DNA of 64,000 nucleotides, from the sequence record MT446416.1. One strand, 5' to 3'. The notes under the pieces are model-generated. The model ran no database searches. It was not told the origin of the DNA and worked only from the letters and a program-made list of their open reading frames with translations. A program made the translations under genes and the position numbers. Shown piece by piece: positions 1-64,000 of this stretch (position 1 is the stretch's first letter; the number at the start of each line of letters is the position of its first letter).

Positions 1-1
1 A

Positions 2-1051
2 GAAGCTGAAGTAATTGACAATACCCTATCTGATGGTGATAAGGTTATGATATTCACAACTGATGGTGAAGATTATGTGAGATACCAAAACAATGCATGG
101 GAAACCATCTTGAGTGTATCAAAAATCAAAACTGACACCACACCAACCTTGTACACAGTAAGAAACACTGCGAACGGAACTGTAGAACTACTAGATAGTA
201 CTGGAGTTGTACTTCGTTATGATAACATCACTAAACAACAGAATGAACCAGCAATACCTCTAGCATTGAACATCGTTCGTATTAGAACCTTTGCTGATCC
301 AGAATTCTTGGTTGATGGTGTTAAGTTGTATGAAACAAATAGAAATTATGCTATCGACGCAATGAACTATGAAGTATTCTACGACACAACACTATACGGT
401 GGTTCTTATAATGATGGAATTACACCAGATGACGTTGATGTTTGGGTAGTGTCTAACGAGATATTTGAAGTTGATGGTGTTACCATTGATAACGGATATA
501 ACTTACCAATTACTGGTGCAGGTGTTCTTAGTGAGTTAGTGAGAACAAAAATGACTGATAGTGTGGAAATTAACGTGTTCGAGTATGATGTTGGTATTAT
601 TCAACCTGTACTGAATGCTGAAGGGGTATGGGAATATGCATATCCACTAGTTAGTGATACATATATTGGTGTAGTTGGTGGAACAGTAACTAACATTACT
701 GCTATCAGTGAAGAAAATGCTACTTATGTTTCACAACCAGATTCAGTTAGTCCATATAGTGTTACTAATAATGTTCTATCTGGTGCTGGTGCAAGTATGA
801 ATGATATTATTTCTCTTGGTTTTGAAAAAGTTGAAGTACGATTTGCAAATAACTTACTCCGTGGGGTAATGTATAGTGCAGAACACGACTTTAAAGAGAA
901 TGTGACATATTCATTTAATGGATTGAACTTAGGTAAAGTTAATTTACTAAAACGTTATAGTGTTAACAGTTATCCAATCGAACTATCGGTTTACTCCGAT
1001 AGTTTGCAAATAAGTGGTAATGACATTAAAAATCTATTAGAAGTTAAATAA
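2..1051 (+). CDS. 3' end of a large virion structural protein (5'-truncated by the window edge)
   Basis: Frame is open from base 2 (EAEVIDNTLSDGDKV) into the ORF-track ATG at 47, so the gene starts upstream of the window. Beta-rich V/T/N/Y composition like neighbouring virion proteins; ends at a terminator. Confidence 0.6.
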   Translation, partial: EAEVIDNTLSDGDKVMIFTTDGEDYVRYQNNAWETILSVSKIKTDTTPTLYTVRNTANGTVELLDSTGVVLRYDNITKQQNEPAIPLALNIVRIRTFADPEFLVDGVKLYETNRNYAIDAMNYEVFYDTTLYGGSYNDGITPDDVDVWVVSNEIFEVDGVTIDNGYNLPITGAGVLSELVRTKMTDSVEINVFEYDVGIIQPVLNAEGVWEYAYPLVSDTYIGVVGGTVTNITAISEENATYVSQPDSVSPYSVTNNVLSGAGASMNDIISLGFEKVEVRFANNLLRGVMYSAEHDFKENVTYSFNGLNLGKVNLLKRYSVNSYPIELSVYSDSLQISGNDIKNLLEVK

Positions 1052-1052
1052 C

Positions 1053-1085
1053 AAAAAGGAGAGCAAATGCTCTCCTTTTCTTTTT
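1053..1085. terminator. Bidirectional intrinsic terminator
   Basis: AAAAAGGAGAGC-AAAT-GCTCTCCTTTT with A/T tracts on both sides, between convergent genes. Confidence 0.9.
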
Positions 1086-3373
1086 TACGCAATAACTTTT
1101 TCTACTGCTTTAGTTCGTTTAGGTTTGATTGCCAATTTACCATCAATCACATCAAACGTTACGTTACCACCATTAACCAGAGAACCACACAACATCTCTT
1201 TAGCTAGTGGGACACGGATGTTTTGCTCAATAGTGCGTTTCATTGGACGTGCACCCATTCCAACTTTAACACCATTTGTTGCCAACCACTCACGAGCCGC
1301 TTTGGTCAGTGAAACTTTAACTTTGCGGTCTTTGATTTGTTCATTCAAACTTCCCATGAACTTATCAATGATGCTGTCAATCGCTTCGCTGCTTAGGTCT
1401 TTGAATGTCACAATACTATCGATACGGTTGATGAATTCAGGTGGCAAGAATGCTTTAATCGCTTTATCTTGTGCTGTATCACTACCGCTCATCCCAATAC
1501 TACGCTTGGTTGAATCTGCTGCACCAAGGTTAGTCGTCATAATAACAGTTACGTTATTGAAGTAAACAGTTTTACCTTGTGAACCAGTCAAACGTCCTTC
1601 GTCCAGAACCTGTAGGAAGGTTAGTAGTACTTTACGATCAGCTTTTTCGATTTCATCGAGCAACAGTACTGCATTCGGGAACTGCTCAATCTTGTCGAGT
1701 AGCAGACCGTTACCAGAATCGTGACCAACATAGCCTGGAGGTGAACCAATCAGTTTAGCAACAGTATGTTCCTGTGAAAACTCGGACATATCGAAACGAA
1801 TCAGTTCAGAACCAGTTGCATCAGCCAGTGCTTTGGTAATTTCAGTTTTACCAGTACCAGATGGCCCAACAAACATGAATGCACCTTGAACACTTGATTT
1901 ATCACGCAGACCAGCACGAGCTACCATCACGTTATCAACCAGTTTCTGTACTGCTTCTTCTTGACCGTATACACGAGAACGGAGTGCATCTGGTAGATTA
2001 CGCATACGTTCACTTTCAGTGCAAGCAACCACGTTAATATCTAGGTTTGCGATACCTGCAACAACTTCTTGAATCAGTGCAACAGTGATGATGTTATCAT
2101 CAGTTTCACGAGAACGTACTTTCGCTGCCGCCGCATCCATTAGGTCGATTGCTTTGTCAGGGAAGTGTTTGTTCTTCAGGAACTTATCACTTAGTGTAAT
2201 AACTGCATCCATTGCTTCAGTACTGAACTCTACGTTATGGAAAGTTTCATAAGTAGATTTCAAACCATTCACAATCGCACGGGTTTCATCAATTGATGGC
2301 TCAACTACATCAATTTTCATGAAACGACGAGTTAGTGCACTATCTTTTTCGATGTTTTTACGATATTCATCGTAAGTTGTTGCACCGATTACACGAATCT
2401 CACCACGAGATAGTGCAGGTTTGAGCATGTTGCTCATATCCATAGAACCGTTGCTTGCTGAACCAGCACCAACCATAATATGGATTTCATCGATGAACAC
2501 AATAGTGTTTTCACGTTTCTTCAGTTCTTTTAGTAGGTTATCGATACGTTCTTCGAACTCACCACGGTACTTAGTACCAGCAGTCAGTGCACCTACGTTC
2601 AGAGACAGAATTTCAACATCTTTAAGATGCTCTGGTACTTCACCATCAGCGATTGCCTGTGCTAGACCATCAATGATTTGAGTTTTACCAACACCAGCTT
2701 CACCAGTCAGGATGGCATTCTTCTTAGTCTTACGGGCCAGAGTTTCAATCAGTGCAGAAAGCTCTTTCTGGCGACCAATCATTGGGTCAAGTTTACCTTC
2801 TTTTGCAAGTGCTGTTAGGTTAGTGGTGTAATCTTCTAAACCTTTTTGTTTGGACGATGGTTGCTGTTGTGCCACTTTTTTCTCCCCAGTTGGCTCATCA
2901 CTAATGCTTTGAAGGTTGATTCCGTTGTCGATTGCTTCTACGTGCTTCTGTAGAGTTCGTGCTGCTTCAGTACAAGTGATACCCTCTTCACGCAATGCTG
3001 CTTCTAGTGCAGTATTTGGGAAGGACAAACACTCAAACAGTACAAAATAAGCATCAATTGAGAAATCATCACGTTTAAGTTGCTCAATTACTGATTTCTT
3101 AGAAAGTTCCTGAACTACACGGTTCACGAGAAGTGATGTGCGGTTCGCTTCATCACCATCAGCACTTTTAGGTGCATGTGGGAATGTTGTATTCTTCAGA
3201 TATGCAATCAAACGACCGTGTAGGTTGTCTGCATCGATGTTCATATCTTCAAATACTGCTTTGATGCTATCGATTGTCAGTACTGTAGCACTTAGATGGT
3301 CAATAGTCAAGAAGGTATGACCCAGAGAAGTTGCCAGTTCGTCGCTTTTTTTGAATAATTGGGTAAGATTCAT
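1085..3373 (-). CDS. clpA: ClpA-type Hsp100 AAA+ ATPase/unfoldase
   Basis: Two AAA modules: GEAGVGKT / VFIDEIH and GPSGTGKT / LLLDEIEK; KYRGEFEER pore loop, GSPPGYVG, GARPMKR. No long ClpB M-domain. Start placed at ATG 3373 after SD AGGAG. Confidence 0.9.
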   Translation of the reverse strand: MNLTQLFKKSDELATSLGHTFLTIDHLSATVLTIDSIKAVFEDMNIDADNLHGRLIAYLKNTTFPHAPKSADGDEANRTSLLVNRVVQELSKKSVIEQLKRDDFSIDAYFVLFECLSFPNTALEAALREEGITCTEAARTLQKHVEAIDNGINLQSISDEPTGEKKVAQQQPSSKQKGLEDYTTNLTALAKEGKLDPMIGRQKELSALIETLARKTKKNAILTGEAGVGKTQIIDGLAQAIADGEVPEHLKDVEILSLNVGALTAGTKYRGEFEERIDNLLKELKKRENTIVFIDEIHIMVGAGSASNGSMDMSNMLKPALSRGEIRVIGATTYDEYRKNIEKDSALTRRFMKIDVVEPSIDETRAIVNGLKSTYETFHNVEFSTEAMDAVITLSDKFLKNKHFPDKAIDLMDAAAAKVRSRETDDNIITVALIQEVVAGIANLDINVVACTESERMRNLPDALRSRVYGQEEAVQKLVDNVMVARAGLRDKSSVQGAFMFVGPSGTGKTEITKALADATGSELIRFDMSEFSQEHTVAKLIGSPPGYVGHDSGNGLLLDKIEQFPNAVLLLDEIEKADRKVLLTFLQVLDEGRLTGSQGKTVYFNNVTVIMTTNLGAADSTKRSIGMSGSDTAQDKAIKAFLPPEFINRIDSIVTFKDLSSEAIDSIIDKFMGSLNEQIKDRKVKVSLTKAAREWLATNGVKVGMGARPMKRTIEQNIRVPLAKEMLCGSLVNGGNVTFDVIDGKLAIKPKRTKAVEKVIA

Positions 3374-3411
3374 GTATTCTCCTAAATGAGTAGTCACTCT
3401 AATTAATAAAC

Positions 3412-3439
3412 ATTATATCACATTCTTTGCGTTTGTCAA
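3412..3439 (-). promoter_or_regulatory. sigma70-type promoter TTGACA-N16-TATAAT (extended -10) for clpA
   Basis: Minus strand TTGACA aacgcaaagaatgtga TATAAT. Confidence 0.8.
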
Positions 3440-3444
3440 CAAGG

Positions 3445-3450
3445 TAAATA
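3445..3450 (+). promoter_or_regulatory. T4-like late promoter core TAAATA
   Basis: TAAATA in the short intergenic gap ahead of the neck gene. The same core precedes structural genes at 9125(+), 9089(-), 13418(+), 19340(+), 34382(-), 35159(-), 35461(-), 38225(-), 42104(-) and 59780(-). It resembles T4 TATAAATA; the hexamer is common in AT-rich DNA, so position is the main support. Confidence 0.55.
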
Positions 3451-3481
3451 AAGATATACCCGATTTATTTTGGAGACAAAC

Positions 3482-6318: not shown

Positions 6319-6330
6319 GGAGGTGTTGTT

Positions 6331-6795: not shown

Positions 6796-6796
6796 T

Positions 6797-13482: not shown

Positions 13483-16400
13483 ATGTACTCGATTAAAACA
13501 GATCTCGATATAACTGGTGGTGCAACGGTTGGTAAAGATCTTCTTGTGAAAGGCGATGCAGTATTCAATAAAAATCTAACAGTTAATGGAACCGTAACTT
13601 TTGCTGACGCTGTATTCACTGCGATTGAAGCAGGAACTGTAGACATTTCATCTACACTAGATGTTGCTGGTAAAGCATCATTGAATGGTGGGATTGAAGT
13701 TCATGGTAATTCCGTAATTGGTAATTTACCAGTTGGCTCTGATACTGCAACGATTAATTCTAATGCACAATTCCAAAGCCCAGTATCAATGGCAGGTAAC
13801 CTAACACAAACGGCTGGCACTGCTGTACTAAAAGATACCCAAGTGGCATCAATGGATGTTCTTGGAACTTCTTCATTTAAAGGTAATATTACTGCTGAAA
13901 CTGGCACTACCGCAGCATTTGACAAAATAACTGCAACTGATGCAACATTCACAAACACTGCAACTACTGATATCACATCAACTGGAACTGCAAACTTTAA
14001 AGATGTGAATATTTCCGGTACACTAGGTGGAACATTTAGTCTATCTGATGTTAATGCAACAACTCTAACTGTTTCTGGTTTAACCAGTCTACAAGGTGGT
14101 GTTACATTAGGTTCCAACATTACTGGTGTGAATAGTAGTGCAAACTTCCGTGATATTAAAATTGGTTCCAATGCTGCAAACACTAACTACCGTTTGAGCT
14201 TTAACTATTCTGCTCCAAGTCTTCGTCCAACTGTAATTCTACAGAACGAAATCCAATCAGAATTGATGTCTCCAGCTACCCTAAGTGTATTGAAAACTGC
14301 ATCTTTTGGTGATTCGTCATTATCCACTTTTGGTATTACTGGTAATGGTCTAAACAAACTAGATTACCTAACAGTATCTGGTAACTCTGTTCAAGATCCA
14401 ACAACTCCACTATTACAAGTAACTTCAGGTAAAACTAAAGTTCATGATTTCGAAGTAACAGGAACTGCAACTATTCCTAACATTGAAAGTACTGGAACTG
14501 CTAATTTTAATAACATCAACGTATCTGGTACACTCGGCGGTACTTTCAGTCTTGATGATATTGAAGCAAACACTCTAACTGTTTCTGGATTAACTAGCCT
14601 TGTTGGTGGTGTAACTTTGGGTGCTGATATTTCCGGTGCTAATAGTACTGCTAATTTTAAAGCAGTAAGTTTAGGACAAAACGCAGCCGATGCTAACGTT
14701 AAGTATGGTTTTGCTTATTCTGCCCCTGGTGCACGTCCAACTGTAATTCTACAAAATGAAATTCAGTCTGAACTAGTATCTCCAGCAGTACTAAATGTAC
14801 AAAAAACTGCTACCTTCGGTGATGCATCTCTTGCAACCTATGGTATCACAGGTAACGGTCTAAACAAACTAGATTATCTATCTATTACTGGTAATGGTAC
14901 ACAAAGTCCAGCAACGCCACAACTACAAGTAGCTGGTAAATCAGTACTAAATGATGTTGAATTCACTGGTACTGTAACTGGCCTAACAGTTGATGTAAGT
15001 GGTCAAGACCTAACTCCTAAATCTGTTGTTGCTGCTGAAGCAATCAAAGGACAAACCCTTGAATCTGTTGGTCAAACCACCGTAGGAACTAACCTACAAG
15101 TTGGTGGAACAGCTAATGTTGTTGGTGCACTAACTGGTACTGCTGCAACCTTTACTGGTGACGTAAGTGCTGCTAAAGGTACTTTCAGTGGTGATGTTAG
15201 CGTTACTGGGCAAACTGTAACTGTACGTGATTTAGTAGTAACTGGCACAACTACTGGTGTAACTGCCCAAGCTGACGTTGATGGTCTTGATATCGCCCCA
15301 AATAAAGTTGATGTTACAACAACACTATCTGTTGCTGGGGACACTACTTTAGCTGGTCTAACTGCTAGTTCAGTAACAAGTACTGGTGATGTTACTGGTG
15401 CGTCTGTATCTGGTAATACAGTAACTGCGGCTGGTGCACTATCTGGTGGTTCTCTTGCAGTAACTGGTGCTGGTTCTATGGCTTCACTAACTGTTCCAAG
15501 TATTACTGGGGACACTACTTTTGCTAATAACGTAACTATTACTGGAACACTAACTCCGAGTAGTATAGATTTAAGCACTACTGATGTAAGTGCTGCTTCT
15601 TTAACAACTACTGGTAACGTAACTGTTGGTGGTTCTCTTGCAGTAACTGGTGCTATTGATTTGTCTGCTGCTGATGTAGTAACAAAATCAGTTAGTGCAA
15701 CTAACCCAAGTACATTTGGTGTAATTAATGCATCTTCTGTTGCCGCAACTGGTGACGTTTCAGGTGGCACTCTAACTACTACTGGTGCAGCGAAAGTAGG
15801 AACACTAACTAGTACTGGTGTAGTATCTGGTTCGCGTTTGTCTTCTGGTACTGCAACAATCTCAACTTCTGTAACAGTTCCAACTTTACAAGCTGAAGCT
15901 GCTGGTGCTGGTACACTAAATCTAGCAAGTAATGTTGTCGCGGCAAAAGATCTAACTGTCACTGGTGTATTCAAACCTGAAGGTGGTCTTGACCTAACAA
16001 CTGTTGATATTACTGCAAACTCACTAACTACTACTGCTGATGTTAATGTTGGTGGAAACTTAGTAGTTGATGGTACTTTTGACCTAAGTGCTGCTGATGT
16101 ATCAGTTAAATCTCTTGTAAGTGCAGAGGCAATTACTAGTGGTGGTGTGATTACCGTTACCGATTCAACCAATACTAGTTCGTTCCCTAAAATTACTTCA
16201 ACTGATGCAACACTCTTTACAGTAAATGCAGGTACTATTAATGCAACTGGCAACAGTGTACTACAAAGTGTATCAGCTACTCAAGTAACTGCTACTAGTG
16301 CTGAATTTTCTGGTAGTGGCCTTGGTCTTCAAGTTGATAATGATGCAAACGTTGGTGGTGCATTATCTGTTGGTGGCATTGCAACTGTTGGTTCTTTAAC

Positions 16401-18441
16401 AACAACTGCTGCTTCTCTTAATATTGCAAAAAATACTGCAATCAATGGTGATTTAGCTGTATCTGGTACACTAACTGCTGGTTCAATCGACCTAAGCAAT
16501 ACTGATGTAACCGTTAAATCTCTTGATTCACTAGGTAACGCACACATTGCTGGTAACCTAACTGTTGATGGTGCATTCGACTTAAGTGCAACTAACCTTG
16601 TAGCTGCAAGTCTAGCAAGTACTGGTTCTACTACTGTTGGAACTGATCTAGTACTAACAACTGGTGTTGTGACTGGTAGCCCAGCTATCTCTGGTAATAC
16701 AACAATCGGTGGAACTCTTGGTGTAACTGGTGCTGTTAACCTAACTGATATTGTTAATATCGGTAAGAAAGTAACAGTGAGTACTGGTGGTATTCAGGTA
16801 GTTGATGGTGGTATCAATACTAACACAATTAACGTTTCTGGTGCTACTACTCTAGCAGGAACTTCCATTACTGGAACTTTAGGTGTAACTGGTGCTTCTA
16901 CTCTAGCAGGTGTATCTGCAACATCACTAACAGTTTCTGGTGACAGTACTGTTCAGAAACTAACTGTCCAAGGTGAATTGATCCCACAAGGTGGTCTTGA
17001 CCTAAGCGGTGCAGACATTACTGCTAATAGTCTAACTACTGCAACAACTATCAATGCAACTGGCCTAAGTACTCTAAGTGGTGGTGTTAGTACTTCTACT
17101 GTGACTGCATCTGGTCTAGCAACTGTTGGAAGTTTAACTTCTACTGCAAACGCATCAGTTGGTGGTAATTTGGGTGTAACTGGAACTCTAGGTGTTACTG
17201 GTGCAACTACTGTATCTTCACTAACAGCTACTGGTGCAGTGAAAACTGGTACAACCCTAACTGTTGGTACTCCAGTTGGTGAACAACCTGAAACTGTACA
17301 GATCATTCCAGATACTTATATTGCTGGTAAATTGCGTGTAATCGGCGGTATTAACGCTGATATTGATGTTAGTGGTCAAACACTAGAACCATATGCAATT
17401 GAAGCTGCTGCAACACTATCTGCTGTTGGTAACATTACTTCTGGTGCAACCATCGTTTCTAAAGCTGCAACAATTGGTGATGTTGGTTCACAAAACAACA
17501 ACCTAACTGTTAATGGTAACGTAGTAACTAATGGTGACTTCACAGTTACTGGGGTACTAAATGCACAATTGAACCAAGCAGATTCCGATGTAGCTGTTAA
17601 ATCTTTAACTGCAACTAATAACGTTGCGGCTGGTACTTCAATCACTGCTGGTACTTCCATCACTGCAACTGGATTACTTAAAGGTAATACTTTAGAAGTT
17701 ACTACTACTGGTTCATTTGGTGGTGCAGTAACTATGTCAAGTGGTGCAAACATCACTGGTACAGTGGGTATTACTGCTGGTGACCTAACAGTAGGTGGTA
17801 ATATCTCTGCAACTGGCACTGCTGGATTCGGTGCAACAACCGTTTCTACAATTACAACATCAGGTTTGGCTACACTTGCAAGTACATCCGTTACTGGTAA
17901 CGCAACAGTAGGTGGAACACTAGCAGTAACAGGAGCACTAACTGCGAATGGTAACGTAACATTAGGTGACGCAGCGGCTGACGTTCTAACCGTTAATGCA
18001 ACTTCATCATTTAAAGAAAATGCTGTGTTTGATAAGGCAGTAACAGTAACTGGTGAACTAACCACTACTAATGCTAACTTAACTACTACAACAGTAACTA
18101 CCAAAAAGTATGATGTAATCCCAACTCAAGTTACATCATCAGTAATTGCTCCAACCGGAACATGGACTCCAGATGGTACAAGTAACGTGTACTTCATCAC
18201 TCTAGACCAAGATACCACGTTGGCTCCAATTACTGGCCTAATTGGTGGCGGTAAAGCTGCATCAGTATACATCTATGTTAAACAAGATACAACTGGTAAC
18301 AGAAACTTTACAACTGATGGTACTTATGCTGTTGTTGATGGTGAACTAAACAAAACTGCTGGTAGCGTGACCATTTACCAAGTAATTTATGATGGTGTAA
18401 GTCCAGTTACTGATTTGTTCATTGCACAACGTACTGCTTAA
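13483..18441 (+). CDS. Very long repetitive fibre protein (1652 aa)
   Basis: T/G/V/S/A-rich beta-strand repeats, a 170-aa tandem duplication and repeated DLSxxDVxxxSL motifs; late promoter core upstream; followed by a DUF4376-like gene. Confidence 0.7.
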   Translation: MYSIKTDLDITGGATVGKDLLVKGDAVFNKNLTVNGTVTFADAVFTAIEAGTVDISSTLDVAGKASLNGGIEVHGNSVIGNLPVGSDTATINSNAQFQSPVSMAGNLTQTAGTAVLKDTQVASMDVLGTSSFKGNITAETGTTAAFDKITATDATFTNTATTDITSTGTANFKDVNISGTLGGTFSLSDVNATTLTVSGLTSLQGGVTLGSNITGVNSSANFRDIKIGSNAANTNYRLSFNYSAPSLRPTVILQNEIQSELMSPATLSVLKTASFGDSSLSTFGITGNGLNKLDYLTVSGNSVQDPTTPLLQVTSGKTKVHDFEVTGTATIPNIESTGTANFNNINVSGTLGGTFSLDDIEANTLTVSGLTSLVGGVTLGADISGANSTANFKAVSLGQNAADANVKYGFAYSAPGARPTVILQNEIQSELVSPAVLNVQKTATFGDASLATYGITGNGLNKLDYLSITGNGTQSPATPQLQVAGKSVLNDVEFTGTVTGLTVDVSGQDLTPKSVVAAEAIKGQTLESVGQTTVGTNLQVGGTANVVGALTGTAATFTGDVSAAKGTFSGDVSVTGQTVTVRDLVVTGTTTGVTAQADVDGLDIAPNKVDVTTTLSVAGDTTLAGLTASSVTSTGDVTGASVSGNTVTAAGALSGGSLAVTGAGSMASLTVPSITGDTTFANNVTITGTLTPSSIDLSTTDVSAASLTTTGNVTVGGSLAVTGAIDLSAADVVTKSVSATNPSTFGVINASSVAATGDVSGGTLTTTGAAKVGTLTSTGVVSGSRLSSGTATISTSVTVPTLQAEAAGAGTLNLASNVVAAKDLTVTGVFKPEGGLDLTTVDITANSLTTTADVNVGGNLVVDGTFDLSAADVSVKSLVSAEAITSGGVITVTDSTNTSSFPKITSTDATLFTVNAGTINATGNSVLQSVSATQVTATSAEFSGSGLGLQVDNDANVGGALSVGGIATVGSLTTTAASLNIAKNTAINGDLAVSGTLTAGSIDLSNTDVTVKSLDSLGNAHIAGNLTVDGAFDLSATNLVAASLASTGSTTVGTDLVLTTGVVTGSPAISGNTTIGGTLGVTGAVNLTDIVNIGKKVTVSTGGIQVVDGGINTNTINVSGATTLAGTSITGTLGVTGASTLAGVSATSLTVSGDSTVQKLTVQGELIPQGGLDLSGADITANSLTTATTINATGLSTLSGGVSTSTVTASGLATVGSLTSTANASVGGNLGVTGTLGVTGATTVSSLTATGAVKTGTTLTVGTPVGEQPETVQIIPDTYIAGKLRVIGGINADIDVSGQTLEPYAIEAAATLSAVGNITSGATIVSKAATIGDVGSQNNNLTVNGNVVTNGDFTVTGVLNAQLNQADSDVAVKSLTATNNVAAGTSITAGTSITATGLLKGNTLEVTTTGSFGGAVTMSSGANITGTVGITAGDLTVGGNISATGTAGFGATTVSTITTSGLATLASTSVTGNATVGGTLAVTGALTANGNVTLGDAAADVLTVNATSSFKENAVFDKAVTVTGELTTTNANLTTTTVTTKKYDVIPTQVTSSVIAPTGTWTPDGTSNVYFITLDQDTTLAPITGLIGGGKAASVYIYVKQDTTGNRNFTTDGTYAVVDGELNKTAGSVTIYQVIYDGVSPVTDLFIAQRTA
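13981..14980 (+). repeat. 510-bp (170-aa) tandem duplication within the fibre gene
   Basis: ACTGGAACTGCxAAxTTTAA starts at 13981 and 14491; proteins STGTANFKDVNISGTLGGTFSL...RPTVILQNEIQSEL vs STGTANFNNINVSGTLGGTFSL...RPTVILQNEIQSEL. Confidence 0.9.
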
Positions 18442-21378: not shown

Positions 21379-22306
21379 ATACAGCCATTGGTGCTTTGAT
21401 TGTTGGCATTGGATCGTAATTAACTAATTTGAAAGAATCCATAGTGAAATCTTCAATATCAGTAATAGTAGGATCTAACCATAATTCTGGTAATGTACGT
21501 GGTTCACGTTGGAGTTGCTCTTTTACTTGTTCAATATGGTTTTGATAGATATGGCAGTCGCCACCATTCCAAATAAATTCACCAACATCTAACCCAGTAA
21601 TTTGTGCAATCATATGAGTTAGTAGTGAGTAACTACTAATGTTAAATGGTACACCAAGGAATAAATCAGCACTGCGTTGATGAAGAATACAACTTAGTTT
21701 ACCCTGTACAACACAAAACTGCACAAAGCTATGACAGGGTGGCAAAGTCATAGCATCAAGCTCACCAACGTTCCATGCACTTAGAATGTGACGACGACCG
21801 TATGGATCAGTATTGATACCTTCAATAACTTGTTTTAGCTGGTCAGTTACACGACGCATAATAACACCATGTGAACCAGTATAATCAATAACTTTATACC
21901 CTTTATCTTTTAGTTCTTGAATTTCTTCAGTACTGGAACTGAATTTATAATCTTCCCATTCACGCCATTGTTTACCATAAACTGGGCCAAGCTCACCATC
22001 AGAATACCCAAGGCTTACACCTTGATTAAGGTAGTTGTCTGTCCAAATTGTTTTCTTTTCTACATCACGTGTCCCGTGTAAAATTTCACACAGACGACGC
22101 TCATCGTGAGAACCTTCAATAAACCATAACAATTCTGAAGTCATTGCTTTCCAAGCCAAACGTTTAGTAGTTACTGCTGGGAAACCTTCTTTTAGGTCAA
22201 AACGCATTTGTTGTCCGATTAGCTTGATAGTGCCAACACCAGTACGATCAACGCTTTCGACACCTTGATCCAGAATTCTTTGATATAGTTCTTGTAGTTG
22301 TTTCAT
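21377..22306 (-). CDS. thyA: Thymidylate synthase (ThyA/td family)
   Basis: DRTGVGT, LGPVYGKQWR, SAWN, LPPCH and QRSADLFLGVPFN motifs; no intron visible. Confidence 0.97.
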   Translation of the reverse strand: MKQLQELYQRILDQGVESVDRTGVGTIKLIGQQMRFDLKEGFPAVTTKRLAWKAMTSELLWFIEGSHDERRLCEILHGTRDVEKKTIWTDNYLNQGVSLGYSDGELGPVYGKQWREWEDYKFSSSTEEIQELKDKGYKVIDYTGSHGVIMRRVTDQLKQVIEGINTDPYGRRHILSAWNVGELDAMTLPPCHSFVQFCVVQGKLSCILHQRSADLFLGVPFNISSYSLLTHMIAQITGLDVGEFIWNGGDCHIYQNHIEQVKEQLQREPRTLPELWLDPTITDIEDFTMDSFKLVNYDPMPTIKAPMAV

Positions 22307-22899
22307 TTTACGTCCTTGAAAAATGTAATAAAGTGTTCCATGTGTTTTTGTGTAGCATTACGTGAACCAATCCCAGTCCAGTTACCGTGTGGTGCTGGTA
22401 TTGAGAATGTTTCAGTAAACTCTTTCAGTACTGTATCATAATAAAATACAGAGCGAGTGTTCATATCATAACAANNNNNNNNNNNNNNNNNNNNNNNATC
22501 CATATACATCTGTACTGCCCATGCAGTTCCACCTGAAACTTGCGTAGGTGATGTAATATTTGCAATACAATATACTCTTTTAGTATTAAGTATCTGATAA
22601 CTATTTCTTGCAAGTAATTTATATACATACGAACCGGGCTTCGGAACTGTTCGGCGTAAAGAGTAACATGCAATGTTTAATTGTTTTAATATTGAACTAT
22701 CACAAAGGATATTGGATGGAATTTCTAATATAGTATTTTCATCTACGCTGCTTTGGTGACCCTTGAATGAAAAATTTATTACTTCAAATCCATTGTCTTT
22801 TGCATAGATAGAAAAAAGGCGGTCAGCACCTGCTGCCCCGCCACTGAAACATACATTAGATAAACCATTGATTGCTTCATCTAATTCTATTTTATTCAT
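22303..22899 (-). CDS. SLOG-fold-like hypothetical protein (contains a 23-N gap)
   Basis: SGGAAGAD near the N-terminus and SGGTAW later; frame appears preserved across Ns at 22475-22497. Confidence 0.45.
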   Translation of the reverse strand: MNKIELDEAINGLSNVCFSGGAAGADRLFSIYAKDNGFEVINFSFKGHQSSVDENTILEIPSNILCDSSILKQLNIACYSLRRTVPKPGSYVYKLLARNSYQILNTKRVYCIANITSPTQVSGGTAWAVQMYMDXXXXXXXXCYDMNTRSVFYYDTVLKEFTETFSIPAPHGNWTGIGSRNATQKHMEHFITFFKDVK

Positions 22900-39256: not shown

Positions 39257-41251
39257 TTAATATTTTTTTGTGTATTTTATATTACCAGAGTTGTAAATCT
39301 TATAATATCCCAATACATCACAGCAAATTTGTCTCTCAGTTAAGTTAATATCATGACCTTTCTTGACCAATTTATGTTTTTGACATTTCTGACGTGAAAT
39401 CCTCTCATGTGTTTGTGGGTCATAATAAAAATATCCGGGTTCTGTATAGCTATCAAACTCAAAGCCAAGAACTGTATAAAGATCACCACTACTCCAATCC
39501 ATATCCGCATATGTCAATAATGATTGTGGATTATATACTGTTTCAAAATATTTTAGTAATTTTGATGCACCACCAACAACTGTACCGGATGAACAGTATC
39601 TGATTAATTCATATTCATAGTTTTTATCAAACCTTGATTTACCAAAGGTCATAACTGCAACTAAATCACTTCCATAGTAAAGTCCAATGTGAATACTTGC
39701 TTGTGCAACACCTTGAATATGGTGTGATTTAGTAAACATATTACTTACTTGTTTGTCTATATTTCTAACAGTACATTTTCTAGCATAAATTCTATTTGAC
39801 ACTAGAAGTTTATTCTTTAAACGTTCCTTGATAATTTTATTTGTTAATGGGTTATCCCATTCATCTTCATAAATGTGAATAAGATTCACCCCATGTTTTA
39901 AACAATCCAATACCTTATCTTGATGTTTAGTGGAATTTACATTTTCATCATTATGCCAATACACACCATTAAATTCAATAGCTAGATTACGGTCTGGGAT
40001 ATACACATCCAACTCTTTAGGTTTCAGCACTGAACGGTCGTTTTCTATAATTTGCATATTTTGTATTAATGATTTTATATAATCAACTAAATCTTTCTCT
40101 TTCAATGAATGACCATTATTTTTCTGACACTTACATTTCACTTTATGATTTTTATACTTACTATAAAACAATTCATCACAATACTCACACCAAAATGGGT
40201 ATTCGTCTGTATTAACTTTCATCATTAGGTCGGTGTTTTCAAATAATGGAATATAGTTTTTATCAATATTTGCAACAATGATATTATATCTTTCGTCTAG
40301 ACGAGCAAGTGACATTTTCTCTTTATACTCATCAGTCTGTGAGTAGTGTTCTGAACCATATCTATTTTTTGTGGTTTCTTTCATTTTTTCAATGATAGAA
40401 TTATTTTGGGCTGGGTGTTTTACACCATATCGCTCCACATTGGTATTATGAACTTTTTCCTGAACACTCATATTGCTCATTGGGTAAAATGAATTATACT
40501 TCAACGTGTTGGTGTTTTTTATTTTATCTTGGACAATTTTATTTGATAGTGGATTGCCACCATATCGTTCAAGATTTGTTTTATTGATTTTTTCACGAAT
40601 CGTCGGTGATGATAAAGAATACTCAGCACCGTATCTTAATATATTTGTGTTTTTGGCTTTCTCTTTTACTTCATTTCTTTTGCTTTGGAATTCAACACCA
40701 TACTTTTTTAAATTTGTTGCTTTTACTTTATTGAATATTTCAGAGTTTTGGTTTGGATATTCACAACCATATCGCTCTATATTAGTTTGTTTGATTTTAT
40801 CTTTAGTTTCTGATGTTTGTAAATTAGATGAGACACCATAACGCTCAATGTTAGTTTTTTCTTTCTTTTGTTTTACTTCTTGTATTTGGGACACATTAGA
40901 TACACCATACATATCCATTAATGTTGATTTTGTTTTATTAGTTCGATTTTTATAATACATTTCATGGCATACATTACATGTATTTTTCTTATTAATCACA
41001 TAGTCATCACAAAATTTATAAAATCCTTTTTGGAAATTTTTGTATCTTGCTTTTTTTCCGCAATATGCAGTTGGAACGGTTGTTATATCATTCATGAACA
41101 TATATAGAATTTTATATATTTCGAAATCAGTTTTTGGTTCTATTCCAAAAGTAGAAAGGAGAACCCTCACACGAGAGTCCCCTTTGTATAAATGTACCCA
41201 TGAATTAATATGTTTTGACAACAAAAGTTTTTTTAATTCTTCATTGTTCAT
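39257..41251 (-). mobile_element. Free-standing homing-endonuclease-like gene (23-aa repeats + Vsr/PD-(D/E)xK-type nuclease + C-terminal domain)
   Basis: Nine KxKxTxxx(R/K)YG repeats, Cys-X2-Cys motifs, ELDVYIPDRNLAIEFNGVYWH; more AT-rich than flanks; inserted between conserved genes. Confidence 0.75.
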
Positions 41252-43579: not shown

Positions 43580-43822
43580 TTATTCTTCTTCACCGAATCG
43601 AATTTTTTTCAATTCTTTTCGTTGTTTGCGAGCAATGGTACTTTTGTGAAGTCTATTACCACGTTTTGTGTCTTTCGTGATGTACCATGAATCTTCTGGT
43701 GCATTATAATCACAATAACCATCTTCTGTAATCGTCCCTAAGAAAGCAGACTTTTTAGGAATGGATGTTTGAGCTTTAGCAGCGAATTGGCCTTTTGCTA
43801 ATTGTTCACGAAAACTGAGCAT
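43580..43822 (-). CDS. Small basic hypothetical protein
   Basis: ATG 43822 after GGGAG. Confidence 0.6.
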   Translation of the reverse strand: MLSFREQLAKGQFAAKAQTSIPKKSAFLGTITEDGYCDYNAPEDSWYITKDTKRGNRLHKSTIARKQRKELKKIRFGEEE

Positions 43823-43867
43823 AATAGTATCTCCCAAATTGTTACGAAGAACTTGTGTTCTTCATTA

Positions 43868-44867: not shown

Positions 44868-45983
44868 TTAGAACATTTGCTTGATTGCTTCAATACGCAA
44901 TTCAGCAACAAAATCACGAATCTCTGATGTTTGGAGTTCACCATCTTTCACTAACTGCTGAATATCAGGTAATTCAACATCAGTATAACGATCATAAACT
45001 TTAATAATCAAATCTTCAAGATCAGAATCAATTTCTTTGTTCAAAATGAAGTTTTCCAGTACTTTGTAAAGGAAATCTTCGCCACCATTGTTTTTGATAT
45101 TCATCTCCAGTAAGATTTGTCCCATTTCAACGGGGGTCTTCTTACGGAAGGTTTTAATATCTTCACGGAAACGCTTGATGTAATTACTAAACTTCACGTA
45201 CTTAACTGGAACCTTAATAGAACCATTAAGTACTGAATCATTATTTACTTCTTCATTTTCAAGAAGTACTGTCCATAAGAAATATGGTTTATATTCTTCT
45301 GTACAATTTGCAGCGATAGCATCAATTAATTCCAGACGTTTCTTGGTAACTGGAACTGTAGTAAATGCCTTTTCGTAATAACCAAATTGTACCAGAGTTT
45401 TGATAAACTTGGAAGGGTTTTCTTCAGAAAGTGCTTTTTCGAATTCAACAAAAACACGATCTGGAACTAGATGGTCTAGTTCACCAGTACTAACCATATC
45501 TTTACACATTGTCATAGTATCATCATGGATTGTAAAGTCTGAGTAACGTGTAGCGAAACGTGCCAAACGTAGTACACGCAATGGATCTTCTTTAAAGTGT
45601 TCTGATACATGACGAAGTACTTTGTTCTTGATATCAGCTTTCCCGCCATAAGGGTCGATGTGAATCTGGAGTACTGGATCATACGCTATGCTATTTACCG
45701 TAATATCCCTTCTGTATAGATCTTGCTCTAGTGTCACGCCTTTAGTATTCACTTCGAAGCCACCGTAGCCAGTACCAGTTTTACGTTCGGTACGTGCCAA
45801 TGCGTGCTCATTACCCTCTGGACTTAGATACACTGGAAAATCCTTACCTACTTGCTTATAGCCAATACTTTGTAAGTACTTAATATCGGATTCGGTAGCA
45901 CCGACAATGACATAATCTTTGTCTTTTGCACGAATACCCATTAAACGGTCCCTCACATAGCCGCCCACCAAATACTTTTTCAT
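44868..45983 (-). CDS. cca: CCA-adding tRNA nucleotidyltransferase (short form, no clear HD domain)
   Basis: YLVGGYVRD...DKDYV, ALARTERK.G.GY.GF, DLYRRDITVN, DPYGG, EDPLRVLR.ARF. Confidence 0.95.
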   Translation of the reverse strand: MKKYLVGGYVRDRLMGIRAKDKDYVIVGATESDIKYLQSIGYKQVGKDFPVYLSPEGNEHALARTERKTGTGYGGFEVNTKGVTLEQDLYRRDITVNSIAYDPVLQIHIDPYGGKADIKNKVLRHVSEHFKEDPLRVLRLARFATRYSDFTIHDDTMTMCKDMVSTGELDHLVPDRVFVEFEKALSEENPSKFIKTLVQFGYYEKAFTTVPVTKKRLELIDAIAANCTEEYKPYFLWTVLLENEEVNNDSVLNGSIKVPVKYVKFSNYIKRFREDIKTFRKKTPVEMGQILLEMNIKNNGGEDFLYKVLENFILNKEIDSDLEDLIIKVYDRYTDVELPDIQQLVKDGELQTSEIRDFVAELRIEAIKQMF

Positions 45984-47047
45984 AATATACCTTCCTCTGA
46001 AAGATGTTTTTTTAATACAGTTAAGTGGTCTTCATAATATGTTACACGTATTAATTTAATAAAATTCTTTTCACAATATTGTGTCTTTATAGTATCGTTA
46101 TCCTTGATGTTTTTCAATTTATCTTCTCCACCCCAATGAGGTGATTTCTCAAAATGTTGTTTACCATCATACTCAATACAAATATCATAATCAACCAAAT
46201 AAAAATCAAATCTTAATAACATTTTATTTTTACAGTCACTAAATGTTTGTTCTTTATTAAATTTTATACCATTTTCAATTAAAAAACGTGTTATTTCTCT
46301 ACTAGCTCTGGATTCAGTATGTTCAGATGAGCATATTGGGCAACCTTGTTTTTTATTTTTTGCTATATGAAAATTTGGAATGATATAAAAAGAATTATTA
46401 TGTTTTTTACAAATTATTTCAACATGAGTGCTACTATTAATGTAGATGACTTTTGAATAGTCATATACATTACCATGAATTTCTTTTGCTCGTTCAACAA
46501 ATTCAGCGGTGGTGAATGCGTGTGCTAATCTGGTTTTTTCAAATCGACAAATAGAGCAACCCTGACCACTTTGTATATTACTAATTTCCATTTCATCAAC
46601 GTGACCACATTTTAAGCATTTATAAGTTAATTTGGTTCTTTTATCTTTAATTATTGGTTGTTCTAAAAGTAATTCACATTCACCAGTCATTAGACTTTTT
46701 GAAGTCTTATAAAGATAATATCTATAATTTGCATTGTCATATTTCCCAATGATATATTTCATACCTTTCGTTTTTATATCATTTATATTTCTTTTTGTAT
46801 ATATAATACCATCTTTTTCAACAACAGTTCTTGTAAAACTAGATTTCCATTCATCACTTGATGTTATAGCAAATCCTAAAATATTATATCCTTTTTCTAT
46901 TATTTCTTCAAAATGTTCTTTAGGTGTTTTTGATGTTTTAATTAATTTTGGTGATAAATCTTCGGGACGCATCCATTCGAAACGCATACCTAATTCTTCA
47001 TGGAAATATACCTTCTCGTTATTTTCATTAAAATAAAATTTATACAT
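45980..47047 (-). mobile_element. Homing-endonuclease-like gene (Zn ribbons + Vsr/DUF559-type nuclease)
   Basis: CLKCGH, GQGCSIC, IICKKH, QGCPIC and LRFDFYL....IEYDGKQH; AT-rich; abuts cca. Confidence 0.7.
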
Positions 47048-54613: not shown

Positions 54614-55002
54614 TCTTCAATCTCCATAGAGTCATCACTTTCGTAATCATCACTAGTGTACTTAGTTTTTACCTCAATACCATTCTCATGTAGGTATGTG
54701 ATAAAACCATTACCATGAACGAATTGATTATAATATGTATTTTCTTCTACATGTGAGTCATAATCATCTTCGTAATATGTGGGCATTGTAACATCATGAC
54801 CAGCACTTTGCAAGTACTGGAACAATTCTTTCAGTACTACTTCGATATCACCTTCTTCTGTACCATAACAATATGCAGGTTCACCGTGAGTGAATTTGAA
54901 TCCTTTACAGGAAACTGTATAAATGTCACTCATGTTCATACCACAATCATCACATTCATGTATAGAACAATGCTGGTGGAATTTAATCTTTTTGATTTGC
55001 AT
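54610..55002 (-). CDS. Acidic hypothetical protein with Cys/His cluster
   Basis: HQHCSIHECDDCG possible metal site. Confidence 0.55.
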   Translation of the reverse strand: MQIKKIKFHQHCSIHECDDCGMNMSDIYTVSCKGFKFTHGEPAYCYGTEEGDIEVVLKELFQYLQSAGHDVTMPTYYEDDYDSHVEENTYYNQFVHGNGFITYLHENGIEVKTKYTSDDYESDDSMEIED

Positions 55003-57119: not shown

Positions 57120-57155
57120 GACGATGATGGCATCGGATATTATCGAATTGCGAAT

Positions 57156-57642: not shown

Positions 57643-57643
57643 G

Positions 57644-58398: not shown

Positions 58399-58407
58399 TT
58401 ATTTTCT

Positions 58408-58442
58408 CCAAAAAAATAGGGACTCGATTTCTCAAGTCCCTA
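58408..58442 (-). terminator. Intrinsic terminator
   Basis: TAGGGACTTGA-GAAA-TCGAGTCCCTA-TTTTTTT. Confidence 0.8.
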
Positions 58443-58452
58443 TCATAACACA

Positions 58453-59064: not shown

Positions 59065-59066
59065 TT

Positions 59067-59381: not shown

Positions 59382-59752
59382 TTGAATTTATTCCTCGCTG
59401 CAAGGGAATTCTGTTTAAGTTCATTCAGAAGTTTAACGCCATCTTCATCTAGACATACGTTTTTGTAAACTTCTCTTTCTACTATAATAGGCACTTGTGT
59501 CTCGATAACTTTAGCATTATCTTGCATTATCTTTTTGGTTTCGATATAGTTTTTTGCATTTTCTTGCTGCATCTTAGCGAGTGCAGAATCAACTTTCTTT
59601 TCTATTTTTTGGTCAATACTTTCTTTATAACCAGTATAATAAGTATTTGCTGACCATCCACCATAAACACAACCTGCCATTACTCCTACTACCAAAATTG
59701 GTTTCCAATATGGTATTAAAACTTTTGAAACAATAATTTCTAGTACACTCAT
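59378..59752 (-). CDS. i-spanin (Rz-like)
   Basis: Single N-terminal TM helix, coiled coil, C-terminal Y.NVCLD; CTAAATA late core upstream (59780). Confidence 0.75.
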   Translation of the reverse strand: MSVLEIIVSKVLIPYWKPILVVGVMAGCVYGGWSANTYYTGYKESIDQKIEKKVDSALAKMQQENAKNYIETKKIMQDNAKVIETQVPIIVEREVYKNVCLDEDGVKLLNELKQNSLAARNKFK

Positions 59753-59805
59753 AATAACATCTCCTATAGTTGGTAATATTATTTAGAGTGTACTATATTA
59801 TATGT

Positions 59806-60222
59806 TTACAACATTTTTTGAATATGATCTACGAGTTTACATAGCATTGTATCATTATCTTCGTACTTTTGATCAACTTCAACTTTGAATTCTTCTTCAA
59901 GTTCCATGATCATTTCAATCCAGTCAAGCCAATCGAATTTAAATTTATCTTCAATTTCCCATTTCTTAAGATGGAAGTTCATTGATACATCTTTCTCTGA
60001 TGCATTTTTGTCGCGACTTGTAATGAATTTGACAATTGCTTTTTCAACGTCAGTTAGTTCACGTGTGCGATATTCTGGATCAAGATACCATTCGCCATTA
60101 TTGATAGCTTCCAACGAAAGTCTAAGTTCATGCATTAGTTTATAACGATCAGTACTTTTCTGGATGCGGTTAACTTCGCGATTCAGTACACGTAGTGCGT
60201 CTTTGATTTGTTCGTTTAGCAT
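59806..60222 (-). CDS. Protein with a C-terminal acyl-carrier-protein-like domain (Ser site replaced by Trp)
   Basis: FDWLDWIEMIMELEEEFKVEV vs canonical ACP [20 protein letters not shown]; ATG 60222 after GAGG. Confidence 0.65.
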   Translation of the reverse strand: MLNEQIKDALRVLNREVNRIQKSTDRYKLMHELRLSLEAINNGEWYLDPEYRTRELTDVEKAIVKFITSRDKNASEKDVSMNFHLKKWEIEDKFKFDWLDWIEMIMELEEEFKVEVDQKYEDNDTMLCKLVDHIQKML

Positions 60223-60232
60223 AACAATCCTC

Positions 60233-62509: not shown

Positions 62510-62907
62510 AAGTAAATCGTTAACTCCTTTAGAAAACCATTATAGTATCGTTTAAAATCATGATCCAGTACTTGGTAGTCATTGTAACTAAAACCTAGAT
62601 TTATAATAGTATCTTCTTGGAAGAATTTCTCTTCATTCATTACTTCGATAGGTTCATATACTTTTCCACCTTTATATACTTTAGTAAAGAACATACCATC
62701 ATTGTTAATTTCAACGTACATGAAATTATTTTCTGGATCTCGTGGACACACAATGTTTAATGAACTGGTTCCGTTGTTATTATATTCGTATGAGATAATA
62801 TCAAAAGAATCGATACCATAACACTTGGACTTTTCTTTGTCACCAAAGACTTTTCTATCTGTACTCATATTGCGTATAGTACTATAGATATCATCAACTG
62901 TAGTCAT
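62506..62907 (-). CDS. Hypothetical protein (EEKFFQ motif family)
   Basis: MNEEKFFQE motif like 48203. Confidence 0.55.
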   Translation of the reverse strand: MTTVDDIYSTIRNMSTDRKVFGDKEKSKCYGIDSFDIISYEYNNNGTSSLNIVCPRDPENNFMYVEINNDGMFFTKVYKGGKVYEPIEVMNEEKFFQEDTIINLGFSYNDYQVLDHDFKRYYNGFLKELTIYL

Positions 62908-62909
62908 AA

Positions 62910-63419
62910 TTAACCACCGTACTTTGACTTGTATGTTTCTAATGATAAAGAAATACGATTTTGCTTTTTAATTCTTTCATCAATATCCTTTGAATTCTTC
63001 ACACTTCTGTATACATCAGCTAATAAATTATAATCTTCTTTATTTGAACTATGCGGTGACCAACCTATATCTGTTTTGATTCGAACATATGCTTTATTTG
63101 ATGTGAAATAAAAACTGAATCCGTTGGACCCATCAAAAATATCATAAGTATCTACCCAATCGCCATAAGGGAAACTCATTGGTACTGACTCGTGATCAAT
63201 AGTGATATCCGATAAATTTTTAGAACAGTACTTTGCAAAGTGATATACAATCGGATCGCATTTTGATAATTCATATTTGTATTCAATGATAGATTTTCTA
63301 TTAGTATCATTGATGGCATATTCTTTCATCAAAGGACTTTTTTTGATGATAAGAGTCCACAGAAACGATTCTAATCCAGTTTCATCAACTTTTTCTTTCT
63401 TTTTGAAAAATGAAATCAT
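62910..63419 (-). CDS. Hypothetical protein (paralogue of 63416-63937)
   Basis: IND..RK.I.E.KYELSK shared motif. Confidence 0.6.
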   Translation of the reverse strand: MISFFKKKEKVDETGLESFLWTLIIKKSPLMKEYAINDTNRKSIIEYKYELSKCDPIVYHFAKYCSKNLSDITIDHESVPMSFPYGDWVDTYDIFDGSNGFSFYFTSNKAYVRIKTDIGWSPHSSNKEDYNLLADVYRSVKNSKDIDERIKKQNRISLSLETYKSKYGG

Positions 63420-63937
63420 TTATATAAACCCTTAATTTTCTGTCTATTATGTATATCATTTTGCTGAATTTTCAAATTAGTAAGATTGTGTCTTACACCT
63501 TCAACACCACGCATTATTTGTAACATAATTAGTGATTCATCATAGGTTAGCACATTGCTATTATTATCGATATACACCTTCACTCCACTTTCAAGATAAT
63601 CATTTTCTTTGGAGTTGAAGTTTCTAATAGCAAACTTGACTCCATTTGTTGTATCCGTGAATACATATCGTTCAGCACCGTAGAATGTTCTACCACGAAA
63701 TAAACTGCCGTCTTCCCACTTCCAACGACTGGAATCATAATCATTAACGTAATCAATGATTAATGGTAGCAAAGGGTGTTTGCTCAATTTATATTTTGCT
63801 TCTAACAGAACACGACGATCTTGATCTGTATTGATACTATCTTTAAGTGAAAAACTTTTTGATATAATTTTAAAGATAATTTCATGCCAAATTAAAGTAC
63901 TGTTTTGTTTTCCAACTGGGCCAAAAAACATATTCAT
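63416..63937 (-). CDS. Hypothetical protein (paralogue of 62910-63419)
   Basis: INTDQDRRVLLEAKYKLSK; SD GAGGA. Confidence 0.6.
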   Translation of the reverse strand: MNMFFGPVGKQNSTLIWHEIIFKIISKSFSLKDSINTDQDRRVLLEAKYKLSKHPLLPLIIDYVNDYDSSRWKWEDGSLFRGRTFYGAERYVFTDTTNGVKFAIRNFNSKENDYLESGVKVYIDNNSNVLTYDESLIMLQIMRGVEGVRHNLTNLKIQQNDIHNRQKIKGLYK

Positions 63938-63967
63938 TCCTCATTAATATAAATCAGTAATGTCTTT

Positions 63968-64000
63968 GTATGCATTAAACTGTAACAGTTTAATGCATAC
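63968..64000. repeat. Perfect 16-bp inverted repeat (33-bp palindrome) running to the window end
   Basis: GTATGCATTAAACTGT-A-ACAGTTTAATGCATAC. Confidence 0.85.

Follow-up and report, generated by a model that had tools for sequence, protein, structure and literature searches.

The palindrome AGTACT occurs 128 times in the final 64 kb of the genome of Escherichia virus TH47, and is the top-ranking hexamer of this stretch (the window: 64,000 nucleotides, identical to positions 288451-352450 of record MT446416.1). The excess over composition is 6-fold in the window, and the word is again the commonest hexamer in the complete genome. It is close to certain that AGTACT is a selected, DNA-level, clade-specific signal. 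Tentatively, it is read here as the site of a symmetric (dimeric) DNA-binding protein, serving as an operator of early promoters and as a genome-wide mark. TH47 is an Asteriusvirus of 352,450 bp whose record carries no annotation; it belongs with RaK2 and 121Q among the jumbo myoviruses and is distantly related to T4. Gene identities in the window rest on synteny with 121Q and on PHROG and Pfam matches; the genes are greedy open reading frame (ORF) calls made for this analysis, not curated annotation. Whole-genome counts for TH47 were made on the complete public record.

A preliminary description of the window had counted about 125 copies by eye, with only about 20-25 expected. The exact excess is larger than reported, with a composition (order 0) expectation of 21.5, and all five positions given as examples (197, 1626, 4339, 5013 and 10923) are genuine AGTACT sites. 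Markov models of order 1, 2 and 3 predict 19.5, 32.5 and 53.3 copies. The order-4 expectation of 112 is uninformative; it is circular because it is built from the pentamers AGTAC and GTACT, 62% of which lie inside AGTACT itself. Palindromes of the same composition are ordinary (ACTAGT 16, TGTACA 24, AGATCT 14, TCATGA 16), and the one-base variants TGTACT, GGTACT and CGTACT, already described as rarer, number 35, 30 and 16. The frequent CAGTACT(G) context was also recovered: a C stands before 65 of the 128 sites and a G after 56, with 27 copies of the complete CAGTACTG.

The most mundane explanation would be a by-product of amino-acid content, of codon or codon-pair preference, or of base composition. 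Half of the sites do read AGT-ACT (Ser-Thr), and AGT and ACT are both preferred codons; nevertheless, this explanation is refuted. When synonymous codons were shuffled within genes, which keeps protein sequence and codon usage, 34.4±5.1 copies remained of the 123 coding sites of the window (3.6-fold, z=17; highest count in 500 shuffles, 52). ACTAGT, TGTACA, AGATCT and GATATC were unremarkable in the same test. For the whole genome, 791 coding sites compare with 222.8±11.2 (3.6-fold, z about 50). As the preliminary description had stated, the sites lie in genes of both strands and in several frames (66, 20 and 38 by reading frame, with four outside called ORFs). Ser-Thr is spelled AGT-ACT in 66 of 124 cases, with 19.6 expected, and Val-Leu is spelled GTA-CTG 26 times, with 3.5 expected. 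Genome-wide, frames 0, 1 and 2 hold 382, 153 and 256 sites versus 118, 43 and 62 expected, an enrichment of 3.2-4.1-fold in each case, and intergenic DNA holds 121 where composition predicts 11 (11-fold). Outside the terminal-repeat region described below, intergenic density equals gene density, at 2.5 per kb. The earlier view that amino-acid usage is an unlikely cause is thus supported by the codon shuffle, by all frames and by intergenic DNA. Disappearance of the excess under a codon-shuffled or Markov null, and equal frequency of same-composition hexamers, had been named as findings that would speak against a signal; both were looked for, and neither test refutes the signal.

The bias reaches the proteome. 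The dipeptide ST occurs 745 times versus 489 expected (1.52x), whereas the reverse, TS, stands at 0.96x; likewise, VL is at 1.34x versus 0.95x for LV, and QY at 1.35x versus 1.00x for YQ. Selection on AGTACT is strong enough to change protein sequence.

In the complete TH47 genome, 917 copies compare with 119 expected (about 8x), and the 8-bp CAGTACTG occurs 203 times versus 3.6 expected (56-fold). Such a many-fold excess in coding and non-coding DNA alike is the hallmark of a highly iterated palindrome. A repeat family as carrier of the sites was ruled out, as the commonest 14-mer context accounts for 11 of the 917. In frames 0 and 2, reading the sites along the sense strand shows about the same preference for C at −1 as for G at +1, which reflects the two-fold symmetry of duplex DNA and not the asymmetry of a signal in messenger RNA.

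The preliminary description aptly remarked that such an excess runs against the avoidance of palindromes. GC-rich palindromes are avoided to an extreme degree: GCGC is absent from TH47 (329 expected) and from all four fully read genomes (TH47, RaK2, BF and GAP32), and 23 palindromic hexamers lack a single copy in TH47. AGTACT is one exception in a lineage shaped by restriction pressure. A second, mild exception in TH47 is GTGCAC (85 versus 35 expected). The related Pseudomonas phage PA5oct is without comparable avoidance of GC-rich palindromes.

For comparison between genomes, TCATGA, which has the same composition, was used as control word (counts given as AGTACT/TCATGA). The excess is 6-7-fold in eight genomes of at least four genera (Asterius-, Alcyoneus-, Mimas- and Eneladusvirus), namely TH47 (917/139), 121Q (903/134), RaK2 (937/142), GAP32 (1011/169), Serratia phage BF (1072/152), and the Erwinia phages pEa_SNUABM_19 (1072/152), Hallingskeid (1313/200) and Kaldavass (1114/174). 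Phage CBB has 112 AGTACT in 50 kb. The excess is not present in Agrobacterium phage Atu_ph07 (25/82), Xanthomonas phage XacN1 (0/127) or T4 (29/51), nor in PA5oct, with 3 AGTACT per 50 kb versus 16.6 expected. Escherichia coli K-12 is depleted (400/1147), so that the phage has one copy per ~380 bp and the host one per 11.6 kb, a ~30-fold difference. The AGTACT signal is peculiar to RaK2-like ('group 2.2') jumbo myoviruses that infect Enterobacterales. In each of the four genera, G at −1 and C at +1 are the least frequent flanks (G at −1 in 62 of the 917 TH47 sites); the favoured flanks are C/G in TH47 and RaK2, and A or C before and T or G after in BF and GAP32. In sum, the core claim of a dispersed DNA-level cis-signal is strongly supported by codon shuffling, by presence in all frames and intergenic DNA, by symmetric flanks and by recurrence in at least four genera. 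Among open-access papers and preprints, none links AGTACT with these phages.

Conservation of individual sites was assessed in codon alignments of orthologues, comparing the AGTACT sites of the window with any hexamer. Versus 121Q, 56% of sites are kept (any hexamer 32%); versus GAP32, 24% (11%); and versus CBB, 23% (11-12%). AGTACT is thus kept about twice as often as background hexamers. Most sites turn over while density stays constant, and the aligned partner genome has an equal number of its own AGTACT in the same alignments. At TH47 AGT-ACT positions, GAP32 has Ser-Thr in only 12 of 39 cases; often a dipeptide is found shifted by one residue. Shared genes of these genera have ~63% nucleotide identity. 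Weak per-site conservation combined with constant density is the pattern of a density-selected signal.

Rapid turnover at constant density could also arise from biased mutation, repair or gene conversion that turns near-matches into AGTACT without any function of the site, along the lines of a model put forward for HIP1 of cyanobacteria. The equality of coding and intergenic density outside the terminal repeat (2.5 per kb) is compatible with this, as are the gathering of deviations from the 8-mer at its outer positions and the co-occurrence of methyltransferases with the excess. Such a process is nonetheless highly improbable. Of the 18 one-mismatch neighbours of AGTACT, 16 are at or above expectation (1.07-2.4x), and only AGGACT and AGTCCT fall below it (about 0.5x). 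The deamination products AGTATT and AATACT stand at 1.14x and 1.45x, with codon-shuffle z values of +0.6 and −1.8. Conversion of serine TCN codons to AGT requires several steps via other amino acids; the fixed promoter register and tandem arrays described below argue for function; and resident homing-endonuclease genes and an island of 8.4 kb stay free of the word. Directed repair of the very short patch (VSP) or HIP type was rejected after all 18 neighbours had been counted, with no usable feeder word depleted.

The clearest positional information comes from early promoters. Between 88 and 106 kb, TH47 has small minus-strand genes, each with a near-consensus σ70 promoter upstream. The layout is TTGACA-N9-AGTACT-G-TATAAT, with AGTACT exactly one base upstream of TATAAT. 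A second AGTACT often lies directly upstream of −35, 22 bp away (AGTACT-a-TTGACA in TH47); in BF, the upstream box overlaps −35 as AGTAC-TTGCA and the boxes are 20-21 bp apart. The offset AGTACT-N-TATAAT is found 16 times in TH47 versus 0-3 times for other offsets. The same peak is seen in RaK2 (17), BF (12) and GAP32 (10), the spacer base being T or A in GAP32 and CBB; PA5oct has no AGTACT-N-TATAAT. Hence, as in an operator, the box has a fixed position relative to −10 and −35 in several promoters, conserved in four genera. Within box pairs, the inter-box spacer differs between promoters and the hexamer is invariant, which indicates constraint rather than shared descent.

These promoters lie in the densest part of the genome. 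Phage fEgEco12 has an experimentally mapped direct terminal repeat of 20,993 bp (PMC13070987), which aligns to TH47 from 105,970 down to about 87,450 and coincides with a hyperdense block of AGTACT. Density in the TH47 terminal repeat is 6-7 per kb versus 2.3 elsewhere (about three-fold), and drops to zero at the inner boundary. There is one hyperdense block of 20-25 kb per genus, containing the box promoters. The non-coding leader at the physical genome end has many AGTACT, including pairs 13 bp apart; at TH47 104,389-104,433, four copies stand in tandem with a 13-bp period.

Several further features of these regions were observed. Short degenerate direct repeats (units like GGCTAAACG and GGATGGCT) occur in the non-coding leader, 0.7-0.9 kb from the physical genome end (fEgEco12 760-930, BF 640-800, TH47 ~105.0-105.2 kb); the block is conserved between two genera and could be an origin or packaging signal. 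On the plus strand of TH47, a strong σ70-like promoter at 104597 is followed by ~700 bp (104600-105300) without a convincing ORF, conserved in fEgEco12; this stretch, in which ARAGORN found no tRNA, may be a non-coding RNA at the genome end. A second promoter class, at TH47 122.9-138.5 kb, has the form TTGACT-tcggtcagccctttttgc-TATAAT, with a near-invariant spacer and without an AGTACT box (n=6); several of the six adjoin homing endonuclease genes.

The dimer-site reading is favoured because AGTACT has dyad symmetry and a fixed register in promoters, because its paired boxes are spaced by about two turns of the helix, and because it forms tandem arrays and is concentrated in the terminal repeat. 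The putative binder is probably encoded by the phage. At promoters, a protein bound to the copies at −19 to −14, often with another just upstream of −35 (20-22 bp apart), could switch transcription; elsewhere, the dispersed copies would give it a phage-specific scaffold on which the 350 kb chromosome could be silenced, coated, protected or organised. The data establish the excess, its symmetry at DNA level, selection that reaches protein sequence, the promoter register, the hyperdense repeat, conservation in the clade and absence from foreign genes; binding to AGTACT, the origin of the binder and the effect of binding are inferred.

The dimer could in principle be supplied by the host. The word would then recruit an Enterobacterales protein, with the nucleoid-occlusion factor SlmA as the obvious candidate, and the copies of phage DNA would block cell division. 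The 12-bp SlmA-binding site (SBS), GTGAGTACTCAC, has AGTACT at its centre, and the phage word is identical to SBS positions 4-9 (PMC3020112). The excess is limited to phages of Enterobacterales, cells infected by the Asteriusvirus Sharanji filament (PMC11895373), and early promoters have to function before any phage protein exists. However, SlmA needs G, T and a purine at positions 1-3 (PMC3020112). No match to GTRAGYRCTYAC is found in TH47, where half-matches number only 27, and the rarest flank in all four genera is precisely G at −1. Moreover, E. coli has 400 AGTACT and only ~50 SlmA-bound sites (PMC3020112). With no copy of the 12-bp consensus and with the required flanks absent and avoided, recruitment of SlmA is disfavoured, and host recruitment as a whole appears very unlikely.

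A palindrome of 6 bp is also a typical target of a type II methyltransferase, and AGTACT might be modified by a phage enzyme, giving an epigenetic mark that times early promoters and marks phage DNA, comparable to GATC in the Dam and SeqA system. AGTACT-specific methylation is known in other large viruses (PMC7253447), and the boxes overlap core promoter elements. The preliminary description had suggested a genome search for a methyltransferase or a DNA-binding protein. For its first part, a PF00145 C5-methyltransferase and a PF05869 Dam-family enzyme are present in TH47, RaK2, GAP32 and CBB, and PF00145, the sole family tested there, in 121Q; both are absent from PA5oct, which lacks the excess. 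These two families co-occur with the excess, as do about a hundred other genes; the families PF01555 and PF02086 are absent. Evidence from relatives speaks against modification of the word itself. Nanopore sequencing of native versus amplified DNA of Hallingskeid and Kaldavass found only GATC, CCWGG and TGCAT modified (PMC11780129); with 1313 and 1114 AGTACT, neither phage is reported as AGTACT-modified, and the literature on these two relatives thus gives no base modification at AGTACT in virion DNA. For the C5 enzyme, bisulfite sequencing of RaK2 indicated methylation at CpG (PMC3622015), and fEgEco12 DNA is cut as predicted by ten enzymes (PMC13070987). Methylation alone also gives no reason for an 8-fold enrichment or a distorted proteome. 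A modification target is therefore quite unlikely, and the proposal of a methyltransferase or repair target made in the preliminary description is disfavoured by the Nanopore motifs of the two relatives and by the undepleted neighbours that would feed repair. In TH47, the C5-cytosine methyltransferase gene (175438-177327, minus strand) has 629 codons versus about 290 in 121Q, GAP32 and CBB. Its extra middle part matches intein-containing proteins and, judging from this similarity, is probably an intein with a homing endonuclease.

The DNA that lacks the word is equally informative. Eleven TH47 ORFs of at least 900 nt are without AGTACT, and seven of these encode homing endonucleases of the HNH or Hef type, including the two of the window (Fisher test of 'no site' versus 'homing endonuclease', p=2.6e-5). 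The 13 homing endonuclease paralogues have 0.57 sites per kb versus 2.55 elsewhere, and 29% GC, a density contrast that is partly circular as the seed genes were chosen for having no sites. Two islands of TH47, 71,774-80,217 and 82,631-87,593, are free of AGTACT, where the largest gap expected by chance is about 2.6 kb; their 37 ORFs have no homologues in RaK2, BF or GAP32. AGTACT marks native, long-resident genes, and mobile or recently gained DNA is without the word.

Both islands carry a related, polar word. The first (8.4 kb, 71774-80217) contains 48 AGTACA on the coding strand versus one in the opposite orientation, spread over all three frames and intergenic DNA. Its 18 ORFs are all lineage-specific, and the pattern is conserved in phage CMSTMSU, which excludes a sequencing artefact. 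The second (5 kb, 82631-87593) adjoins the inner boundary of the terminal repeat, on its inner side, and has 19 small ORFs without homologues in other genera; each of its 12 GTAC reads GTACA on the plus strand, opposite to the AGTACA of the first.

These islands speak for the main competitor of the dimer site, a strand-specific word of about (C)AGTAC that is read by an enzyme on single-stranded or translocating DNA. Candidates are a primase, a translocase or a Chi-like regulator of a helicase-nuclease that spares the phage while host DNA is degraded. The palindrome would then be the most compact way to display the word on either strand, in a genome whose replication and degradation both proceed from two directions. 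Density peaks in the terminal repeat, adjoining the DNA ends; the 30-fold difference between phage and host is what a self-marking word requires; and half-palindromes that retain AGTAC are enriched 1.5-2.4x. In addition, phage DNA is unmodified and cuttable (PMC13070987), yet ~7 host-genome equivalents are made per cell (PMC11895373), so that some distinction between self and host is needed. On the other hand, flank preferences are symmetric, and it is the 8-bp palindrome that reaches 56-fold enrichment. Binding to duplex DNA is indicated by the fixed register in promoters and by the tandem arrays with their 13-bp period. Words of the Chi or KOPS type are asymmetric and skewed in orientation; AGTACT is neither, the AGTACA island at 71.8-80.2 kb being the sole exception. 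Purely polar islands are found in Asteriusvirus only, in lineage-specific genes that are possible imports, and no candidate enzyme was identified. A strand-specific word is judged unlikely.

Some observations weigh against a dimeric binder as well. About three quarters of sites are not common to the genera, which would suit a generative process as well as weak selection on each site. Site-free stretches of 8.4, 5.0 and 3.2 kb show that local density is not essential, and the polar AGTACA island hints at a strand-specific functional unit instead of a dimer site. RNA polymerase or the phage σ-like factor could be the reader of the promoter box, with no separate protein involved. The evidence for unmodified sites comes from relatives, concerns virion DNA only, and relies on motif calling by manual inspection. 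Finally, the second part of the genome search gave no candidate: of 104 TH47 ORFs common to RaK2, BF and GAP32 and lacking in PA5oct and XacN1, 20 clade-specific proteins of unknown function were searched with Pfam and no DNA-binding domain was found, nor do these phages have a helix-turn-helix of the TetR type (TetR_N domain). Among the mechanisms listed in the preliminary description, a DNA-organising or DNA-binding protein still fits best with register, tandem arrays and dense repeat, although no binder was identified.

A broader proposal starts from the contrast between phage and host. These relatives of T4, which are free of hydroxymethylcytosine, might tell their own DNA from that of the host by the density of AGTACT, with no need of modified bases. 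Through the word, a phage protein would recognise phage DNA and protect it, organise it or use it preferentially during shut-down or recycling of the host chromosome; this protein would also turn off early promoters in the terminal repeat. This is possible, if rather doubtful. If it is true, the one-sided AGTACA of the imported island suggests parallel systems with other words in other phage lineages.

A number of known systems share some of these properties. Like AGTACT, the cyanobacterial HIP1 (GCGATCGC) is a short palindrome found in great excess throughout the genome, inside and outside genes; it, too, is retained in spite of codon preference and conserved between relatives above chance. 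Deviations from HIP1 reportedly concentrate at the outer bases, an observation attributed to Elhai in 2015. In contrast to HIP1, AGTACT is found in a virus and not in a cell, has an AT-rich 6-bp core without detected cognate methylation, occupies a fixed place in promoters, forms a three-fold denser terminal-repeat block, and is depleted in the host genome. The function of HIP1 is described as unresolved (PMC5861425). SlmA with its SBS (whose centre is AGTACT) and Noc with its binding site (NBS) also combine scattered palindromic sites with a dimeric protein, but number only tens per bacterial genome, and the SBS requires flanks (GTR...YAC) that the phage lacks or avoids. Over-representation under weak density selection is likewise seen in Chi, KOPS and DNA uptake sequences, which mark 'self' for an enzyme and are missing from imports until amelioration; they are asymmetric and orientation-skewed, whereas AGTACT is palindromic and only the Asteriusvirus AGTACA island is polar. 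The functional model proposed here for the hypothetical AGTACT protein is that of φ29 p6 and SPO1 TF1, phage proteins that bind the whole viral chromosome and shut off early promoters. These recognise DNA shape or a modified base (hydroxymethyluracil, hmU), not a defined hexamer, and the φ29 and SPO1 genomes are not known to have an enriched word. As a separate observation, the E. coli Chi sequence GCTGGTGG occurs 23 times in TH47, where about 2 would be expected, and 17 of the copies lie on the main coding strand; the excess may in part be an effect of GCT-GGT codon usage.

A lineage that purges palindromes thus keeps one of them at ~8 times chance across genera of ~63% identity, and reshapes its proteins in doing so. 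Retention despite purging and protein cost implies a strong, conserved interaction between a protein (or enzyme) and DNA that is central to the biology of the clade. Its members are widespread, with genomes of 350 kb, and infect E. coli, Klebsiella, Cronobacter, Erwinia, Serratia and Pectobacterium; therapeutic use is being developed for some. For these phages, AGTACT provides a direct handle for finding the factor by affinity capture on the word, a simple signature of clade members and of foreign inserts in them, and a ready annotation of early promoters and of the terminal-repeat region. It is also a tractable viral counterpart to the long-unsolved HIP1 problem.

Table 1. Features of the TH47 window that bear on the distribution of AGTACT.
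Feature	Position in window	Strand	Basis
Dispersed AGTACT, 128 sites (~1 per 500 bp), extended consensus (T/C)C-AGTACT-G(A)	1..64000		counts and nulls
Long tail fibre proximal subunit gene, 12 AGTACT, typical native late gene	13483..18441	+	site list, gene identity
DprA-like gene holding assembly gap 22475-22497	22303..22899	-	flanks collinear, in frame
Hef-type homing endonuclease gene, 0 AGTACT in 1995 nt, within 3.2 kb site-free gap	39257..41251	-	
tRNA nucleotidyltransferase gene, 7 AGTACT in 1116 nt, densest long ORF genome-wide	44868..45983	-	
HNH homing endonuclease gene, 0 AGTACT in 1068 nt, 26% GC	45980..47047	-	
AGTACT pair 20 bp apart (54813, 54833), coding DNA example	54813..54838		site list

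Features of the window are listed in Table 1. The encoded proteins include a ClpA-like protease, the tail sheath, further tail and baseplate components and the proximal subunit of the long tail fibre, as well as thymidylate synthase, a DprA-like protein, tRNA nucleotidyltransferase and thymidine kinase; and there are two homing endonuclease genes. No tRNA genes or Rfam families were matched within the 64 kb. The long tail fibre gene contains an AGTACT pair with a spacing of 21 bp (17068 and 17089). The flanks of the assembly gap (23 N) match the DprA-like orthologue of 121Q collinearly, in one frame and 24 nt apart, which corresponds to the 23 N plus one base of the window; the sequence is thus continuous and in frame across the gap, which could conceal one or two AGTACT at most.

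A small basic protein is encoded on the minus strand at window positions 43580-43837. It has no homologue in PA5oct and XacN1, no Pfam family and no Atlas lead; with about 80-85 amino acids and an isoelectric point of 9.5, it is 65-71% identical across four genera.

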